Below are positions 995-47,067 of a stretch of DNA of 64,000 nt, in pieces. The stretch comes from Guillardia theta CCMP2712 (taxonomy: Eukaryota; Protista; Cryptophyta), in NCBI RefSeq assembly GCF_000315625.1, contig NW_005434527.1:37941-101940 (forward strand), read 5' to 3'. How positions within the stretch are numbered: the stretch's first letter is position 1; every line of letters begins with the position of its first letter. The notes beneath the pieces are model-generated. The model saw only the letters and a program-made list of their open reading frames with translations. It did not search any database and was not told the origin of the DNA. The translations under genes were made by a program, and so were the position numbers.

Positions 995-3588
995 TCATGC
1001 TCCCATGCTTTTGGCTCCAGCCATCTGATGTTTCGCCATGACTGAGTACATGCCCTGCAACATGCGATAAGGAAGAGAGCACTGAGTGCGGGCAACATGC
1101 GATATGGAAGAGCTCTCTCTCTCTCTCTCTCTCTACCTGTAGCTTCATGAGCTCTTGATGGGTTCCCTTCTCTACAATCTCTCCATCTTCAAGGACGCAG
1201 ATACCTGCAGATCACAATGAGGCGACAAATTCAAACTTCATGCTCTTCTCACAGGTGGCGTCCTTAATGGTGCTCAGGCGATGTGCGATCACGAGGACAG
1301 TTCTTCCCTTCATCAGCCTGTAGCCACTCACATCCTCCCTGCTCCAAGAGACAGGTACCGGTCGAGCGCCTCTTGCACGGCTCCTTCACTCCTCGCGTCA
1401 AGCTGACTTGTAGCTTCATCGAGTATGAGAATCTTCGGGTCTTTCAGGATGGCTCGCGCGATACTGGGAAGTCAGATTAGTCACTTCCTCTGCCACGCGT
1501 TTTGTCGGACCTGAGACGCTGCCTCTGCCCTGCACTTAGTCCGACCTGACTCACCATAGTCTCATACCTAGCAAGGATGTCAGTAACAGAAGAATGAAGA
1601 GTGCATGGCAGACCCCTGCGGAAGCTTGTTGATGAATTCTTCCGCGTTTGCCTCACGAGCTGCTCGGATCACCTCCTCATCAGTGGCGTGGGGTTTGCCA
1701 TAGCGAATATTGTCCGCCACAGAGCCATGAAAGAGCATCGGCTCCTGGCTTACCGTCGCCAACTTGCTACGAAGCCACTCCAGGTCGAGTTGGCGGAGAT
1801 CGCGACCATCAAGCTAATCGTGCGTGTGAGGTCAAGTACAAGGGAGGTGGGAGGGAGTGGAGGACAGTCTGAAGCCAAAAGAACACAAGGAAGCAATGAA
1901 GAGCACATGAGGAACGGGTATTCGGGACATGTTAGCGAAATGACAACCTTAATGTGCCCGGAGTCAGGATCGTAGAATCGCTGGAGCAGAACAGCAATGG
2001 TGGACTTGCCGTTACCGCTGCCTCCTACGAGCGCTGTAATGGTGCCGGGATTGAGGGTGAGGTTGAGTCCCCTTATCACTGTGACATCAGGTCTCGTTGG
2101 GTATGAGAAGAAGACGTTCTGCAGCTCGAGGGTGCCATGGATACTGTTTGGTTGGCTGCCTCTGCCTCGTTCAATGAGAGGCTGACGACGAAGAGTGCCA
2201 AAAACCTTGGAGGCGGACGCGAGAGCTCGTTGCTGCTCGTTGAGTATCTGCATGAGACTTCCAAGGGCGTTCCCAATCTTCCAGCTGTACTGCATGAACT
2301 GCATCATGTTCTCCAGGGTGATTCTTCCCTGCGCCACAAGAGATCCGCCATAGTACATTCCGCCAGCAGACAACATGAGGTTGACAGCATTGAAGAAGAG
2401 ATGCGCTCCTCCCGTGAAGATACGATACTCGTTCTCCATCACGTACTGTTGCATCATCCTCTCCTCATACCTCTCGCTCTCCTTGCCTTCCGCACAGAAT
2501 GATTGAACTGTTCTGGCGTTGTTGAGAACCTCAGAGGCGATTGCCGCTGTTTCTCGAGCTGCTTCATGTGCTCGAATCGCCTTCTTCCGACTTGCTCCCT
2601 GTGCTGCAACTGAGGCAATCGAAAGTACTGGAACAGCTGCGACCACCAAGAGAGTCGCATACGGTGAGATAGAAAGGACTTTGTATGCTCCATATACGAT
2701 GGTAGTCAACGATGTCAAGGTGTTGGTGATCTGGTCAGTCACTGCCTGCTGCATTCTCACCACATCCTCGCCCATCATGGACATGAGCTGGCCTTTGCTG
2801 TTTGCATCAAAGAAACCTATCTCCTGTTGAAGCATGGCAGCATACAGCTTGATCCTCAGTTTCTGCCGAATGCGTTCGGCCAGAGTTGCCATGAGAAAGT
2901 GTCTTGTTCCATCCAGCAGAATGATCGCTCCTTGAAGAAGCATGAATGTGTAAATAGGGGCTTTCAAGGGTAACTTTTCTCGACAAGCTGTCATGACGCC
3001 AGAAAACGCTGAAGGGAGATACAGGTTGAGGAGAGTGAATGTTAGCGTGACCGCTATGGCTGCCGCAAGGAAAAACCATTCACCATCGAGAATGCTGAAC
3101 AAGTCATAGAAGCTAACGGGCTCTTCCTCGTCGCTGAGTGAAGAAGCCGGTTGCTGCTGGTGTCCTCCCTGCATTGTTGGAAGACCTGTTCCTGGTTCGC
3201 AAATCGCATCGTTACTCTGTCCTGATAGCTGCAAGCACAGCACTGAAGACGCCCCTGCTGCCAGCAAGCTTGCCAATCGTGATCCTGATGTATCACATGA
3301 CCAGTTTTGGTCGTCATGGTGATGATTCTCGTGACTTTTGTTTTTGAACGTTCCCGAGGTCTTAAGATGTTTGGTCTTCTCCAGATCTGAAGGGGATTGA
3401 AAAATGTTGGAGATGTGCGGGTGTCTTGAAACCACGTTGGACGTGGAATAAAGCTGCTTCACGTGATTGAGAAGGATCCTCGATGAAGAGCTGACGGTTA
3501 CCCTCTGCATTGAAGATAGTGGCAGAAGAGAAGTAGAACACCACATAGATCGTGCAAGCAGTGATATTCTTGAATGTGGAAACATCAT
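995..3588 (-). CDS. ABCB half-transporter (ABCB10/MDL1-like, probably mitochondrial)
   Basis: TM domain, Walker [18 protein letters not shown], signature LSAGQRQRL, Walker [17 protein letters not shown]; 3' exons spliced to [19 protein letters not shown] (stop 995-997); Ser/Arg-rich N-terminal presequence. Confidence 0.92.
1112..1134. repeat. (CT)n microsatellite, preceded by a short direct repeat, in last ABCB intron
   Basis: ctctctct run; caacatgcgata...gaagag occurs twice at about 1058 and 1093. Confidence 0.8.
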
Positions 3589-4297
3589 GGATCTTGCAAT
3601 GCTCCTTTGTCCTCAAGCCGTCAAGCAACTACTAGACTAGTTCCCTACCATATCTCCAGCCATGCTGAAGCTATTTTTTACTCCCAAGTGTCCACCACGG
3701 TCATCAGTAGTGCCAGTCCCGGATCCGGCCTCATCCAAGGCCCCGCAACCGTGTATTTAATTGATTTATTCAAAGAATCAAACTGGTTTGATTCGATCGC
3801 ATTTAACTTAAAAACTTTGAGCAAAGAGTGCAGGGGACCAGATTTGAATTCTATTCCCCAAGCATCCAGTACCGGTATGATTCACTGTAAAACGTACTCA
3901 TGAACATGGGTGGGTGATTACTTGCGTTCAAACGGAAAGGGTGGACCGACCCCTCACCATCCTCTGCTACTTTCACAATGAAATGTTTATCCTAAATTTG
4001 GAAATTTAGTGGACTCTTACCCCCCAAATGCAATAAAATTCTCATAGGGGAGGGGTGGAATTGTTGGCAGTTGGTTGGTATCGCGGTTGGGCGGGGAAAC
4101 TCGGGGAGAACAGAGGGAGGGGTGGTGGTAGGATCGGAGGGGTTGATTTGAATTTTGTAGGGGTAGGGTAAAGAGTAGTACGGGGTGATGCCTGGGAAGA
4201 TTATGGGAATATTGGGGTCATGTGAGATAATGTTGGATGACGGGGTACTACTTTTTTTGAATCCCAGGGTGGGTAGCAACGGGCTGGGAATTATTAA

Positions 4298-38688: not shown

Positions 38689-41621
38689 ATGGAAGGGGAG
38701 CGGACGCTGTTGCTAGTCGGAGACGATGGAGGAGAAGAGAGCGGGAGAAGAGAAGGAGGAAGGGGAGTAGGAAGATGGATCTCGAGGAACTGCTGCTCAG
38801 GAAGGATCCCCGTCCTTGCATGCTCGATCGTCGTCGCTCTCTTCGTCGGAGCGTTGCACCTGCTCCCAGAGGACGCCTCTCACCAGACGTTCTCGAGAGC
38901 CAAAGGCAAAGCAACAGGCCAGCAGCTGAAGCATGCTGATCATGCTCATGTTAGAGCTCCCAGATCCTCCACCATCTCCTCCTCGATGCTGAGCAAGATA
39001 CCCAGTGACATGCGTGCTTCTATCAACTCGAGTGCGGACCCGTGCACGGACTTTTACGAGTTCTCTTGTGGGCAATGGCTGGAGGAGACGAGCATACCCT
39101 CTTGGCAGTCCTCATGGGCTAAGCAGTGGGACGGGGTTACCACAGATGTTGAGCACGAGACAGTCAAGGCGCTCCAGAAGGACGCGGGGCCAGCAGGAAC
39201 ATTTTTCCGTTCCTGCATGGACACGGCTACGATACAGAAGCTCGGCAACGCTCCTCTCAAGCCATGGATGAATGGCGTGGAGCTAGTGAAGGATCATGCC
39301 TCCTTCATGCGATCTCTTGCAAACTTCGCTCTGTCCGACATGACGGTCTTCTTCGGGTGGTGGGTCGATGCAGACAGCATTGACTCGAGCATCAACAGCT
39401 TCTTCATAGCGCAAGGCGGCATCACCATGCCCGACCGCTCCTACTACATCGACCCGTCCAAGAGCATGGCGAAGAAGAGGCTGGCCTTCAAGACGATGGT
39501 GTTGAACATCATGCAGCTGTCGGGGAGGACCAGGTCTGAGGCGGTCGAGGACGCGAACAACGTCATGGAGCTTGAGACAGCCATAGCGAGAGCTATGAAG
39601 GACAACGCAGCGGAGCGAGACGAGCATGGGGAGAGGATGCGCGTCTCTGAGCTTCAGCAGCTTGTGTCGAGCATCGACTGGAAGAGCTGGCTGAAGATGC
39701 TGGGTTGCCCGGACGTGGGGAGCGGGAAGGGAAGACATTTGATTGTGAAGAACAAAGAGTTTCTGACCAAGGTAGGAGAGCTGATGAAGACCTCCAGCTA
39801 CGACAAGATCAGAAGCTACTTGCGATGGCAGGCAGTCTACAGCTTCGCTCCGTACCTGTCCTTCCCTTTCGAAGACGAGCTTGTGAGGTACAACAACGAG
39901 ATCTACGGGATCTCAAAGCTTCCTCCGAGATGGCGCAAGTGTTTCTTCTCAACCGGAGAAGCGATGGACATGCATGTTTCTCGAGTCTTCGTGAACCATT
40001 ACTTCCCCGAGTCATCACGTCGACATGCCCTCGACATGTTGATGCAAATCCGTGAGCAGTTCAATCAGACGCTGCAGAAGAAGGAGTGGATGGATGAGGC
40101 GGCGCGTGTTAAGGCTGTCTACAAGCTTCAGCACATGTTCCTCGAGGTCGGCCATCCCTCTGTGTGGCCTCCTAGCGCCTTCCAAGACTTCAAGAGCTTC
40201 GGGGGCATCCGGGACAACACTTACTTCGACAACATCGTCGCCACTAACGCATTTGACGTGCAAAACGCGCTGTCACGGTTGGGCAAGAAGGTCGACAGAC
40301 GACGATGGGGCAGCTCATCGGCGACAGACGTCAACTCCTACTACTCGAGGAAGGTCAACGGAATTTTCATCCCCGCAGGCATCCTCCAGCCTCCTTTCTA
40401 CAGCCCGACACAGGCCATTGCCAGAAACTATGGCAGCGTCGGTTCCATCTGCGGGCACGAAATGACCCACGGCTTCGATGACATCGGTACCTCCCGCCTG
40501 GTTGCTGGTCGCAGCTGACGCATAGAGCCCAGGACGTGAGTATGACGCGGATGGGAATAGAAATGGCTGGTGGGACGAGCAGGTGGTGAAGAACTTCAAG
40601 GAACGAGCCAAGTGCATATCCGAGCTCTTCTCTAGCTATGAGGTCGACGGCAAGGTTGCTACGCTCCCTCCTTGCCCCTCCTCTTCCTCCCCTTCCCTCC
40701 TCGTTCCTCTATCTCCACTTCCTCCCCTTCCCACCTCTTTGCTCTATCTCCCATTCCTTCCCTCCCCGCTCTTTCCTGCATCCCCTCATACGGTTCCTCC
40801 TGCTCTCAGTCCTCCTGTTCTCCTTGTCGCCTCTGCTCGTCTCACTGATTGTTTTCCTGCTCCTTGACCAACAGCATGTCAATGGAGAGCTGACGCTAGG
40901 TGAGGCCATCGCGGACTCCGGAGGTCTCAAGGTGAAGCTCCTCTTGCTCCACGTGCTCTCCTTGTTCACTCCCCGACAGTTCTCCTGGGAATCTTTTCTG
41001 CATGCATATCAGCCGTCGCACACAGACCGGTAGCGGAGCGTTGGCTGACTTGTTTGAAGTTGATCTCTCCTGCCAGGATGTTGTTCTTCATCGCCATGGG
41101 GCAGACATGGTGTGAAAAACTCAAACCGCAGGTCAGTCTCTATCTTCTCCTTGTTTGCCGCCACTTGCTCTCTACCTTCTCCTTGTTTGCCGCCACTTGC
41201 TCTTCTCCTCTGCTCCTCCTCGCCCCTTTCCTTCTGCTAAACTTTTTCATTCAGGGAGCCAAGGCTTCACTTCTCACTGATCAGGTCGATTGTCTGTCTT
41301 TATTCACCCCGTCTCTCCTCCCCTCCTCCTCCTCTCCTCCTCCTCTCCTCCTCCTCCTCCTCCTCCTCTCCTCCTCCTCCTCCTCCCTCTCCTCTTCCTC
41401 CTCCTTCCTCCTCCTTCCTCTCCTCCTCCTCCTCCTTCTCTTCCCCCTCCTCCCTTATCTTGCTCTGGCTCTTTGTTTCTCTCACTCCTCATCTTTGGCA
41501 GCACCCTCCTTCCAAGTTTCGCGTCATCGGAACTCTCAGTCAGTTCGCTCCGTTCGCGGAGACTTTCAGGTGTCCTGTTGGCTCTCCCATGAATCCCGCA
41601 CGGCGATGTCACTTGTGGTAA
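38689..41621 (+). CDS. M13 family zinc metallopeptidase (neprilysin/endothelin-converting-enzyme-like), type II membrane protein
   Basis: N-terminal [64 protein letters not shown]. Confidence 0.95.
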
Positions 41622-41938: not shown

Positions 41939-42619
41939 ATGGCAGCTCCGCTACCTCTTTCCTTCCTCCTCCTGCCCCTCTCCCTCTCCCTTCGATCAGC
42001 TCCCCCTCACTTCTCCTTCTCTCCCTCCTCCCTCCTCTCCTCCTCTCCCTCCTCCCTCCTCTCCCGCTCTCCTTCCCGCTCTCCTTCTCTCACTTGCGCC
42101 AGGCCTCCTCGACCATGCCGCGCTTGTTCATCTGCCATGTCGAAGACGCCGGGAGGGGGAGAGGAGGAGGGGCAGTACCATGAGGTAGAGTACAAGGGAG
42201 AGAAGCTGAGGGTGAAGGACGGGGAGCTCCTTCGCTCCTCCCTCCTGCGAGCCTCCCTCTCCCCTCACAACTCCCTCGCTCAGACTATCAACTGCCGCGG
42301 GCTGGGAACCTGCGGCACCTGCGCCGTCAGCATCCAAGGACGCGTGTCTCCTGCCGAATGGACCGCCATGGAGCGAGCTCGTCTCAACTTCCCCCCGTAC
42401 AGCAACGACAACAACTCGCTCCTCCGCCTCGCCTGCCAGGTCCATCCCGCCTCCTCCTCCCCTCCTCTGACGTGCGACCGGTAGGTGCGAGTACAGGGCG
42501 ACCTCAAGGTCACCAAGTTCGACAAGTTTTGGGGTCAAGGCAAGGAGGAGACGCGTGACAAGAAGTTTACAGCTCCTCTGGGAGAGCTGGAGTACATCCT
42601 AGATCGCAAGAGAGAGTAG
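41939..42619 (+). CDS. 2Fe-2S ferredoxin of cyanobacterial type with bipartite-like leader (1 intron)
   Basis: NCRGLGTCGTCAV...RLACQ|VRVQGDLKVTKFDKFWG; hydrophobic then Ser/Pro/Arg-rich N-terminus. Confidence 0.85.
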
Positions 42620-42731: not shown

Positions 42732-43312
42732 CTACCTCCACCCGACCTTGGACTTGGAACGCTCAAACCCGAAACGCTCCTTGTTGGAGGGCTTGCCATG
42801 AGCCGAGGATGGCCGTTGATCCTTGGGCAGCTTGAGGATCGAGTCTCTGCTGTGGGGAGATCAAATCAGACAAGGAAGAGAGGGGAGGGGAGGGGAGGGG
42901 AGGGGAGCACCTGGAGCTTGTTGCTGTGGAGGGACGAGGAGCAGAGCGGGGGGGATGCAACGAAGTTGCGTCAGTCTGTGAGCGGGTGACGAGGCGAGGA
43001 ATCGCTGTCGTCTCTTTCTTGGACAGCAGCCGTTTGGTCTCCTCCTTCTTCTGCCTGAACCTGCCGCAAACCGTCATCGCCTCCTTCTCCTCCTCGCTGC
43101 TCAGAGACCTGGCAAGTCTTTCCTCCAGCGTCTCGCACTTGTTCCCATCCTTGTTCTCGTCTCCGAAGGTTCCACTGCTCTCATCCTTGCCACTTGCATG
43201 TGGGGCCCGCTCCTCTTCCTCCTCCTCCTCCTGTTGCTCCTCCTTTACCTCCTCAGCATTCCAGTCTGACAGCGAGTACAGCGACTCGAAGCCCGAGGGA
43301 CCTGAGGAGGAT

Positions 43313-43348
<36 letters not shown>

Positions 43349-46300
43349 CCTGTGCTCTGACCCGAGAGAGAGGAGCGATGGGTGAGCAGGGTATGCCTGT
43401 GGACGGAGTCCTTGTGTCCTCCGAACTCAAAGCTGGACGAAGACAACCTCCTGTGCTCAGGCGAGGAGGAGGAAGAGGAGGAGGAAGCAGAAGCAGGGGC
43501 GGAGGCCTCCGGTTGCTGGGAGGCGGGAGGATCGCAAAGGGTCTTGACGTCACGTTTCTTCTCCTCCTTCATCTGCTTTCTCAATCTTTCGTTCTCCTCC
43601 TTTTGCTTCCGTTCTTCCACCTGCTCAGCATCAGAGGCACATGGCGAGGGAAGAGGCGCAGGCACCTCCTTCTTCTCGAGCTTCTCCTGCAGCATCGCCA
43701 GCTGCTCTTCCAGCTTCTGCTTGTCCTCCTCGACCCTCCTCGCGCTCTCCTTCGCCTCCTGCACCACCTGCTGCATCTCCTTGAGGGCAGCCGCCGACCC
43801 TCCATCTCCCCTCCTCTTTGCTCCTCCAAGCTCCACCCCCCGGGCCCTCGTCGCAAACTGCAGGGAGCAGGACGTCTCTGGTGCATCGGAGTCGCAGGGG
43901 GAGGAGCAGACGAACATGAGGACCTTGGCATCGCCTGCGAGCGAGTCCTGCAGGAGGTGGGTGAGCTTCGAGTCCCTGAAGGGGATGTGCTTGCTCTTGG
44001 CCACGAGAGCAGACACGCAGTTGCCCAACGCCGACAGCGACTTGTTGATGTTCTTCGCCTCCGTCAGCCGCTCCCCAGTCGCCCCAGTCCTTGACAGCCT
44101 CTGCAACTCCGTGAGGAAGGGGAGGGGAGGAAGAGANNNNNNNNNNNNNNNNNNNNNNNNNNNNNNNNNNNNNNNNNNNNNNNNNNNNNNNNNNNNNNNN
44201 NNNNNNNNNNNNNNNNNNNNNNNNNNNNNNNNNNNNCGAGCAGCCCTCGCTCGCGATCGGATCAAACTCAGGCCCATCGCCGCCGTTGGCGAAATGGGTG
44301 CAGGTTGTCCAACCTAGCCGTCGCCTAATCTCCCACCATCACCCCTCGGGTCGTCAAGTCGGGGGGGGGGAAGGGGAGCCTGAGAGGAAGTGGAGGGGAG
44401 GGGATGGGATCACCTCGGAGCCAGCGAGGTCGATGAGGTGCATCTTGCCAAAGAAGTTGCCGCCCTTGAGGAGGTCATGGCAGGTGACGTAGACGGAGAA
44501 GACGCAGTGGGAGCGGCTGCTCTGCTCGTTCATCTGCGTCGAGCTCGTCGAGCGATTCTTCATCCCCAGCGCGATCACACGCTGAACGTCCTGAGGAGGA
44601 GGAGCGGTCACGGGTAGGAGAGCGGCCGAGGCAGGAGAAAGAAGGGAAAGGAGGGGGAGGAGATACCTCGAGATCTTGGACAGTGACGAGCTTGAGGTCA
44701 GGGACGTATGTGGAGGAGGTGGAGGAGGAGGAGGGATCAGGTTTGACGTCCAGTCGCTTCATCTCCCCCTTGGAGTCGTGCAACTCCAGCAAGTCCTTGA
44801 GCTGCTCGTTGTAGATCTCCATCAGGCTCACCTGCACACAGTCAGCTGGAGATGAAAGCTGGGAACGAGCTGGACCTTGAACTCGTACTTCATGGTGGTT
44901 CGTCGCTCGAGGGCGAGGCGGAAGAGCATGTCAAGCGCGCGGTAGTTCACGCCCCTCGCCTCGCTCCTCCCCTCCATCGTGTGAGTCTTTCCGCTGCCTG
45001 TCTGCCCGTACGCAAAGATGCAGATGTTATAGCCGTCCATGACCTGCAAGGCTGCTGAGTCAGAAGAGGCAGGCAGAGCAAAGGAGGAGGAGAGGGAGGA
45101 GGAGGAGGAGGAGGAGAAGGAGGAGGATGGGGGAAGAAGGCAATCTGCTGCGAACCGAGACGACAAGAGGAGCAGTCTCTTCGAAGACTTCCTCCTGCGA
45201 GGAATCGGAGGAGAAGATCTTGTCGAAGCTGAAGTTGGAGATCTTCCCTCCCACATTGAGGTTCAGCTCTGTGTCGGAGGTGCACTGGATCGCGTTCTTC
45301 TTCCCGCTCTGCTTCTCTGACTCCGAGATCTGAGCGCCAGTCAAGAGAGAGCAGGAGGAGGGAGTGGAAGGAGTCAGGGAAGAGGGGGGAGTCGAGGAGG
45401 AGAAGGCTACCGGACGAACTCGGCAGAAGACTCGGATGTTTCCCTTGAGCTCTTGAACCTGCGGCATGTATGAGAACAGCGATCACGTTCTGCCCCTCCT
45501 GCTCCACATCCCCATCCGTCTTTCCTACCAGGTTGTGCAGGCGCCGCCTCTCAGCTACTTCCTCCTTGAACTTCAGATTGGTCTCGTCCAGCCCTGACTG
45601 GATGGAGCTGGCAACCTGAAGGATGCTCTTCTCCAGCAGGCCACCAGCATCCTTGAGCGATGGCAGGATTGAGCTTCTGACATCCATCACGTACCCTCGG
45701 AGCGCAGCAAACTCCTCTCGGATGCTGCCAAGGGAGGTCTGGACCGAGCGGATGCTACCTCGCAGCCTCCTCGACTTCATCTTGCCTCTCTGAACCTCCT
45801 CCTCCAGCTCCAGCTTGAGCTTTCCCAGCTCCTCCTCCTTCACCTTCATCCGGTCGCTGCTCGCTTGCTTGAACTTGTCGTGCGACTCCTCCATCTCTCG
45901 CTTCTCTTGCTCCAAACACTGCGATCGTTCTTTCTCCAGCAGATACTCCGGCTGTGCCTCGATGTCGACGGGGGCCGAGGAGGACTCCATTCTGTCCCTC
46001 ATCGCCCTCTTGAGCCTTTTGATCGCCTGCTCCACCAGGTCGTCACTGTCCTCGTTGACCTCGCACACGCCCATGCTCTTCACGTCCCCGCCGCTGGCCA
46101 GCAGGTCGCAGAGGGAGGAGAGCTCCGCCACGAGCGCCTCCATCTTCCTCTGAGAGGCCTCCTGGTCACCCTTGCCGGGCGAGCTCTCCTGAATGTTTGG
46201 CATCAGGTACTTCATGCTCATCGCCAGTTCGTCCTTGTCCTCAGCCTGCGACATCTCCTGGTCGGGTCGGAGGTAGGATTCATCCAGCATCGAGTCGCCG

Positions 46301-47067
46301 GGGTCTCTGCAGTCCTGGAAGCAAGATTGACGTGCCATGCTCTGCCTCAACCCTTCTGCACAGTCCTGGAAGCCACTCTCAGACGCTCTCCCTGCCATGC
46401 TCCGCCTCATCATCGCTCTGGTGCTGTCAAACTGTGGAGGAGGAAGCATCGAGTCCCTCGGAGATCGCACTTGCTTCAGCGTAGGCAACTCAGGTATCCA
46501 TGGGCCAGATTCAGCAGCATCAGGGTGCGAGGACGATGAGATGTTGTCTGTCTGGATGTCTTCTTCGCATGTGATGTAATCGTGAATCCTGAACGTGTCT
46601 GTTTCAAGAATCTTCTGTTTGCGAACTATTGCGCTCCTCCAAACAAGCCTCCCGTCCAAGTCCTTGAGCATGTATTGATACACGATTTCAAGGGAAACGG
46701 GGAAATAAATCTCAATCTCCCAGTTCCCATCGCCATTTCTCTTCATCCTCTTCGCTTTCTTCTCCTCCCAGTTCCCCAGGTGCTTGGAGGATCCTGTCAT
46801 GTACATTTCAACTCCAACGTCGTCCACTTGAGGGCGACTGGGAGGATGATTCACGCGAAAGATCACTTTCGCCAATCTTTCATCCTCATGGTCAAGTTTG
46901 GCTGCCATGCCAGCTGAGCTCATTAGCGCCTGCGTCATTCCCTTCTCTACGACTGCGATGGGCGTGCGAAGGAGGTCCAAGAAGGCCCGGTTCCTGCTCA
47001 GACATGCGTCAGAAGGAGCTGAGGACTGTGACTTGCTTTCATCTCACCCATGACCGGGACTGAACAT
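42732..47067 (-). CDS. kinesin-14 motor with N-terminal CBM20 domain and coiled coil; spans assembly gap (N 44137-44236)
   Basis: [23 protein letters not shown] neck, [35 protein letters not shown]; N-terminal [10 protein letters not shown]...W...YQY...VW; ends KVGWR*. Confidence 0.9.

Follow-up and report, generated by a model that had tools for sequence, protein, structure and literature searches.

Can a microtubule motor carry a polysaccharide-binding module as its tail, and if so, what would that tail bind? The question is raised by a gene on the minus strand of a 64,000-nucleotide stretch of the genome of the cryptophyte Guillardia theta CCMP2712 (contig NW_005434527.1, positions 37,941 to 101,940 of the forward strand; hereafter the window, whose numbering is used throughout). 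The original prediction, made from the sequence alone, held that this gene joins a starch-binding domain of family CBM20 to a kinesin-14 motor. We found the residues it quoted in the open reading frame 44947..46980 (-), and found the fusion repeated in a G. theta paralogue on contig C13 and in an orthologue, P0001.

The fusion of CBM20 and kinesin-14

The evidence that the fusion is genuine does not depend on splicing across an assembly gap that lies in the locus. In the window gene, the CBM20 domain, the stalk and the start of the neck share one exon (exon 2). In the C13 paralogue (L013, C13:461500-470500), the open reading frame 2818..4269 holds CBM20, stalk, neck and the first motor strand in one frame, and the remaining motor exons follow, to ~5900 of L013. 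P0001 is a protein of 1092 residues with the Pfam domains CBM_20, Microtub_bd and Kinesin, and its coding sequence runs unbroken through 3.5-kb contigs that lack introns, found in three samples. We therefore regard the CBM20-kinesin-14 fusion as confirmed and not an artefact. Merging of a neighbouring CBM20 gene with a kinesin gene owing to the gap might be suspected from the position of that gap inside the locus, and from the public model of a third paralogue (GUITHDRAFT_107592), which comprises CBM20 and a coiled coil only. However, 2.3 kb separate the CBM20 from the gap, which lies downstream of it within a motor intron, and the neck is encoded in the CBM20 exon. The same fusion occurs in the C13 paralogue and in full-length transcript contigs, free of introns, of other cryptophytes, and the third paralogue merely enters a 5.5-kb gap. 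Such a merger is extremely improbable. No contigs encoding P0190, a 90-residue fragment of the window gene's own protein, were found.

The N-terminal domain matches the Pfam profile CBM_20 (PF00686) over residues 55-127 of the translated stretch 46501-46980 (-), with an E-value of 2e-11 and 44 bits (cut-off 23.3). A profile scan of the 87.1-Mb assembly (669 contigs, in which the window is C147:37941-101940) returned CBM20 at C147:84540-84761 with 45 bits. An AlphaFold model of 46576-46872 (-), built on a 16-sequence family alignment, has eight strands and a predicted local distance difference test score (pLDDT) of 84. In Foldseek searches it matched the starch-binding domain (SBD) of Bacillus cereus beta-amylase (1cqy) with a template modelling (TM) score of 0.82, and other solved CBM20 domains with TM scores of 0.78-0.84, including those of cyclodextrin glucanotransferases, glucoamylases, STBD1 (8x8k, TM 0.78) and GDE5 (2z0b). 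The best 50 PDB matches listed for the model were all CBM20 domains or CBM20-bearing amylolytic enzymes. Fold matches in the ESM Atlas were CBM20 clusters throughout; feature and fold searches there returned generic CBM20 clusters only, and no taxa for CBM20-kinesins. The domain is thus modelled as a bona fide CBM20 beta-sandwich fold, and the match on which the original prediction had staked its case held in both profile and structure.

Within the 208 residues before the neck, AlphaFold (AF2, alignment A3) predicted one uninterrupted 140-residue helix (residues 68-207, pLDDT >90), and the last ~120 stalk residues are conserved in orthologues. The kinesin-14 neck, RRRLHNL, directly precedes the GN junction of exon 3 across a GT..AG intron, and PF16796 (Microtub_bd) matches at the neck/motor junction with E-values of 1e-13 and 9e-15. 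Together with Microtub_bd, PF00225 (Kinesin) is found in successive exons at profile positions 7-69, 65-130, 126-175, 175-237 and 236-326, and P-loop, switch I and switch II could all be read in an intact motor. The motor is not C-terminal but internal, with ~350 residues after it: a helix-like segment that is short and conserved, then an acidic patch and, at the end, basic sequence, a charge pattern shared by P0001, P0003 and P0007. Grouping with kinesin-14 was tested on orthologues by phylogeny, and every best match of P0001 is a kinesin-14 (KIN-14, KIFC2/C3), among which the motor tree places the CBM20-kinesin clade. By these sequence features the window gene product is a kinesin-14, for which minus-end-type motility is predicted.

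Gene model and the assembly gap

The locus, window 47067-42763 (-), reads as an intact nuclear gene of eight predicted exons, with ~1184 codons if its tail is intron-free. Its features are as follows.

47048..47067 (-): exon 1, 20 nt, ATG and MFSPGH(G); donor GT at 47047; weak homology to LFSPRHNG of P0002
47047-46994 (-): intron 1, GT..AG
45529..46993 (-): exon 2, N-terminal region, CBM20, linker, helical stalk and start of the kinesin-14 neck (…AERRRLHNL); acceptor CAG at 46994, donor GTAGG at 45528
46576..46872 (-): CBM20 domain, by Pfam PF00686, AlphaFold model and Foldseek
45532..45951 (-): stalk, one 140-residue helix into the neck, probable dimerising coiled coil, by AF2 on alignment A3
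45411..45458 (-): exon 3, neck-motor junction with GN motif; Pfam Microtub_bd; matches P0001; GT..AG borders
45156..45329 (-): exon 4, motor, Kinesin profile positions ~7-69
44876..45043 (-): exon 5, motor with P-loop GQTGSGKT
44667..44831 (-): exon 6, motor, Kinesin profile positions 126-175
44414..44590 (-): exon 7, motor with switch I (SSRSH) and switch II (DLAGSE)
44101..44413 (-): intron 7, containing the assembly gap 44137-44236; donor GTGATC, acceptor TTGCAG
42763..44100 (-): exon 8, last motor third (to ~43800), conserved helix-like stretch, acidic patch, basic end and stop

All seven introns have GT..AG borders as read from the sequence. Exon 2 is a single open frame matched in tblastn by P0001, P0002 and P0008; in exon 8, the tblastn alignment of the orthologue reaches 43699 and the Kinesin profile is matched at positions 236-326. 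The model is least secure in exon 1 and in the tail: the start MFSPGHG is backed weakly, by its homology to P0002, and the tail may contain introns. Searches were made with single exons or natural orthologues.

The gap at 44137-44236, which the original prediction had proposed to close, proved to lie inside intron 7. Exon 7 ends in GGC TCC GAG before GTGATC at 44414, exon 8 starts with AGG CTG TCA after TTGCAG at 44100, and the join after DLAGSE reads exactly as in P0001. Coverage of the Kinesin profile extends to position 237 on the near side of the gap and resumes at position 236 on the far side, and the alignment of P0001 takes in its residues 587-648 ahead of the gap and 646-780 beyond it. 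Because profile and orthologue run unbroken across the flanking exons, the gap hides no coding sequence.

Downstream, the convergent 3' neighbour of the kinesin gene encodes a small 2Fe-2S ferredoxin-fold protein (Fer2, E-value 7e-6; window 42137-42484, +). Another downstream neighbour, at window 38689-40518 (+), encodes an M13 peptidase (Peptidase_M13_N, E-value 7e-90).

Distribution and phylogeny of CBM20-kinesin-14s

The architecture is no isolated case. G. theta has two CBM20-kinesin-14 paralogues with a motor, the window gene (group A) and the C13 gene (group B). Its third paralogue, GUITHDRAFT_107592, which matches the assembly at 99% identity, is annotated as a 381-residue CBM20 protein (L020, C30:45000-54999; CBM20 in open reading frame 1714..2586), in which CBM20 and coiled coil are followed by a 5.5-kb run of N (L020 4239-9775) at the putative motor position. 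A search with P0001 yielded ten further clusters that carry PF00686 with PF00225, the combination that the original prediction had suggested looking for, and which is not unique to the window gene. Both Pfam families were found in P0002, P0007-P0011 and P0013, and also in kinesins in which a PLAT domain accompanies CBM20 (P0072, P0110); the same search returned a kinesin with a CBM48 module (P0053). Every member that could be named comes from a cryptophyte (Hanusia phi, Rhodomonas salina, Guillardia theta and Teleaulax amphioxeia), and no red alga could be named; further clade members are from unnamed marine protists. The motors of P0002 and of the Teleaulax protein P0003 are identical, and P0171 is the Hanusia phi orthologue of the C13 paralogue.

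In a motor-domain tree of 119 kinesin-14s, a clade of 16 rows (SH-like approximate likelihood ratio test, SH-aLRT, 97) held all CBM20 kinesins except the PLAT type. Where a row of this clade has no Pfam CBM20 label, its sequence is either truncated at the N terminus or carries a divergent CBM20, picked up by the family CBM20 profile with an E-value of 1e-11. As judged from these sequences, CBM20-kinesin-14s form a conserved clade with two sister groups, A and B, in cryptophytes. An exhaustive search with the family CBM20 profile gave 2248 CBM20 matches, and the top single-domain full-length matches were the CBM20-kinesin family. Heading the same search were giant proteins of 2100-2700 residues with 12-13 CBM20 repeats (P0162, P0163 and P0168). 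In a word-indexed search, the CBM20 of the window reading frame found P0001 only, and that of P0007 found only itself.

The proteins with PLAT, CBM20 and kinesin-14 (P0072; P0110, L023 1536-5660; P0215) have 1374-1447 residues and, in the motor tree, make up a clade of their own next to that of the streptophyte KIN-14s. Their genes lack introns and lie on genomic contigs of 13-15 kb, adjoining an INO80-type gene in two runs, which would fit an intron-poor genome and proves nothing. P0053, from an ENA metagenome contig, combines a kinesin-14 with a glycogen-binding module of AMPK type (CBM48, PF16561) at its N terminus and represents a second type of motor with a glucan module. Taken together, the CBM48 and PLAT-CBM20 fusions indicate that, at the level of sequence, glucan-module tails on kinesin-14s arose more than once.

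We also noted P0128 (NCBI MGB1594572.1, 'MAG: Promethearchaeia archaeon'), half a kinesin motor in the 90%-identity cluster of the cryptophyte-type CBM20-kinesin P0008; most probably a eukaryotic contig was here binned in error with an Asgard metagenome-assembled genome (MAG). We found no mention of a CBM20 kinesin in the paper on Goniomonas avonlea or in its supplements.

Predicted location and the starch paradox

Cryptophyte starch is stored in the periplastidial space. In line with the original prediction, which saw no signal peptide, neither the window gene nor its two G. theta paralogues nor seven full-length relatives showed a hydrophobic leader: their maximum 11-residue hydropathy was ≤1.5, versus 2.76 for a G. 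theta CBM20-GH77 protein with a leader that served as control. The P0001 transcript moreover has an in-frame stop upstream of its start. With no signal peptide found in the family, the CBM20-kinesin-14 should be in the host cytosol. The ligand of its CBM20 is then a real puzzle, since starch is periplastidial, and the original prediction had seen this correctly. The puzzle would dissolve if the motor worked inside the periplastidial compartment, near the starch and on nucleomorph-encoded tubulin, having entered by an unrecognised route or by means of an unseen upstream exon; starch and nucleomorph-encoded tubulins are both established residents of that compartment. Against this stand the leaderless N termini of the window gene, both paralogues and seven relatives, the upstream stop of P0001, and the ease with which a leader was recognised in the control, and we consider a periplastidial motor very unlikely.

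The ligand site and the proposed function

Residues of the ligand site were mapped by alignment on the Aspergillus niger glucoamylase SBD (1ac0), and family counts were taken over 40 sequences from clusters at ≤50% identity.

W543 (site 1): W in the window protein; W in 40/40 of the family
W563 (site 2): W in the window protein; 38 W and 2 Y in the family
W590 (site 1): W in the window protein; W in 34/40 of the family
K578 (site 1): Q in the window protein; Q in 33, K in 4 and T in 3 of the family (n = 40)
E591: R in the window protein; variable in the family
N595: V in the window protein; variable in the family
Y527 (site 2): V in the window protein; not conserved in the family
Y556 (site 2): falls in a deletion in the window protein

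Given this architecture, we think it probable, with some reserve, that the window gene encodes a cytosolic internal-motor kinesin-14 whose CBM20 tail binds a glucan-type ligand and either tethers or moves a glucan particle or couples the motor to glucan status. The stalk would dimerise the protein and present two CBM20 domains together at the end of a long stalk. There, the conserved site-1 tryptophan pair would bind an alpha-1,4-glucan-type ligand, with glutamine replacing the usual lysine; each domain alone would probably bind weakly, and avidity would help. The motor could then tether a glucan-bearing particle or move it towards microtubule minus ends, or, as an alternative output, its activity could be coupled to glucan status in a form of glucan sensing. 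The basic tail may provide a second, nucleotide-independent microtubule contact.

Several findings weigh against glucan binding, beginning with the site itself. The replacement of the site-1 lysine by glutamine, which the original prediction had read from the sequence and the alignment to 1ac0 bore out, extends to 33 of the 40 family members. E591 and N595, polar residues of site 1, are substituted and variable, and of the A. niger-type binding site 2 the window protein keeps W563 alone, with Y527 replaced and Y556 deleted. The equivalent of W590 is lost in P0001, P0189 and the PLAT type. Site 2 is also absent from many non-amylolytic CBM20 domains. Further points concern the cell. G. theta lacks GT3 and GH133, the classical cytosolic glycogen enzymes (both 0, Table 2, PMC6260743). 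We also considered a DPE2-type enzyme, normally cytosolic, as a sign of cytosolic glucan. The G. theta CBM20-GH77 (DPE2-like; L022, C43:201500-207000, open reading frame 3273..4049, -) carries a clear hydrophobic leader, MFDIRRLVLVTILILSTTISV, and gave no support; it seems, from that leader, to be routed towards the plastid complex, which leaves no known cytosolic glucan for the motor to bind.

These observations bear on a different account, in which the CBM20 fold was kept and the binding of storage glucan lost: the domain would serve as an adaptor for proteins or another ligand, or as a module folding back on the motor, in an otherwise ordinary mitotic or organising kinesin-14 with an unusual tail. 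The altered lysine, the largely lost site 2, the variable E591 and N595 positions and the loss of a site-1 tryptophan in some sublineages all agree with it, as does the lack of any known pathway for cytosolic alpha-glucan in G. theta. Plant malectin-domain kinesins, the closest analogues so far described, are found at division structures, and their carbohydrate binding is unproven (PMC7094084). What this account explains poorly is the pair of solvent-exposed site-1 tryptophans: they are the most conserved non-core positions in a family with a mean column identity of 36%, which is hard to understand without a stacking ligand. The independent CBM48 and PLAT-CBM20 fusions to kinesin-14 also point to glucan as the common theme. 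The conservation and exposure of the tryptophans speak for continued binding of a stacking ligand; the polar substitutions and the loss of site 2 speak for a lower affinity or a changed specificity. We regard the loss of glucan binding as possible, if rather unlikely, and continue to favour a glucan-type ligand.

A bolder extension of the glucan-binding function is that the cryptophyte host cytosol holds an unrecognised alpha-glucan structure or soluble pool, which CBM20-kinesin-14s, in two or three paralogous lines, position on microtubules or report to the cytoskeleton. Candidates for such a glucan are relic glycogen of the heterotrophic ancestor and glucan exported from the periplastidial space. 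We offer this as a speculative proposal and hold it to be doubtful.

Comparison with known systems

Full-text literature searches for a CBM20 or starch-binding kinesin found no description, as the original prediction had supposed; the architecture itself is already visible in automatic Pfam annotations of public sequences. Kinesin tails usually choose their cargo through protein adaptors. A starch-binding fold with stacking tryptophans conserved across an algal lineage suggests instead a direct coupling of motor and polysaccharide. If the bolder proposal of a cytosolic glucan pool or structure is right, CBM20-kinesin-14s would be the first motor class with a polysaccharide-binding module of defined ligand as its cargo selector. 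Two questions become testable: whether there is alpha-glucan in the host cytosol, and whether CBM20 has been re-used for another ligand.

Use of a non-amylolytic CBM20 as a targeting module, which brings another activity to glycogen, is known from STBD1 (genethonin-1) and laforin. Both presumably keep the site-1 lysine, and their partner is not a motor: it is either a membrane anchor that bears an ATG8-binding motif or a phosphatase. STBD1 is described as a glycogen receptor in glycophagy (PMC12785236).

Among motors, KIFC2/KIFC3-type kinesin-14s resemble the window protein in neck and motor sequence and in their Pfam domains (Microtub_bd and Kinesin), and relatives in the same region of the tree are labelled kinesin family protein C2/C3 (JGI KO names). 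Animal KIFC2/3 differ in that their motors are C-terminal and they have no carbohydrate-binding module. The plant KCH kinesin-14s, named in PMC7094084, are built in a similar order, with a domain that binds cargo or filaments at the N terminus, then a coiled coil, a minus-end-type motor in internal position and another coiled coil at the C terminus; unlike the window protein, they have a calponin-homology (CH) tail that binds actin.

Plant malectin-domain kinesins (MDKIN1/2; KIN-14Q/R class) have an N-terminal beta-sandwich of carbohydrate-binding type, followed by a coiled coil, a motor in the middle and an extension at the C terminus (PMC7094084), and MDKIN-class kinesins are among the best-scoring named matches to P0001. 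Their tail, however, is malectin (PF11721) instead of CBM20, and we found no PF11721 match in the window exons, P0001, P0002 or P0007. The plant clade is also separate in the motor tree, and its members are land-plant proteins with roles linked to cell division. With the CBM20 family, the kinesin-14 catalogue gains a defined subfamily, and one that runs parallel to the still unexplained malectin-domain kinesins of plants.

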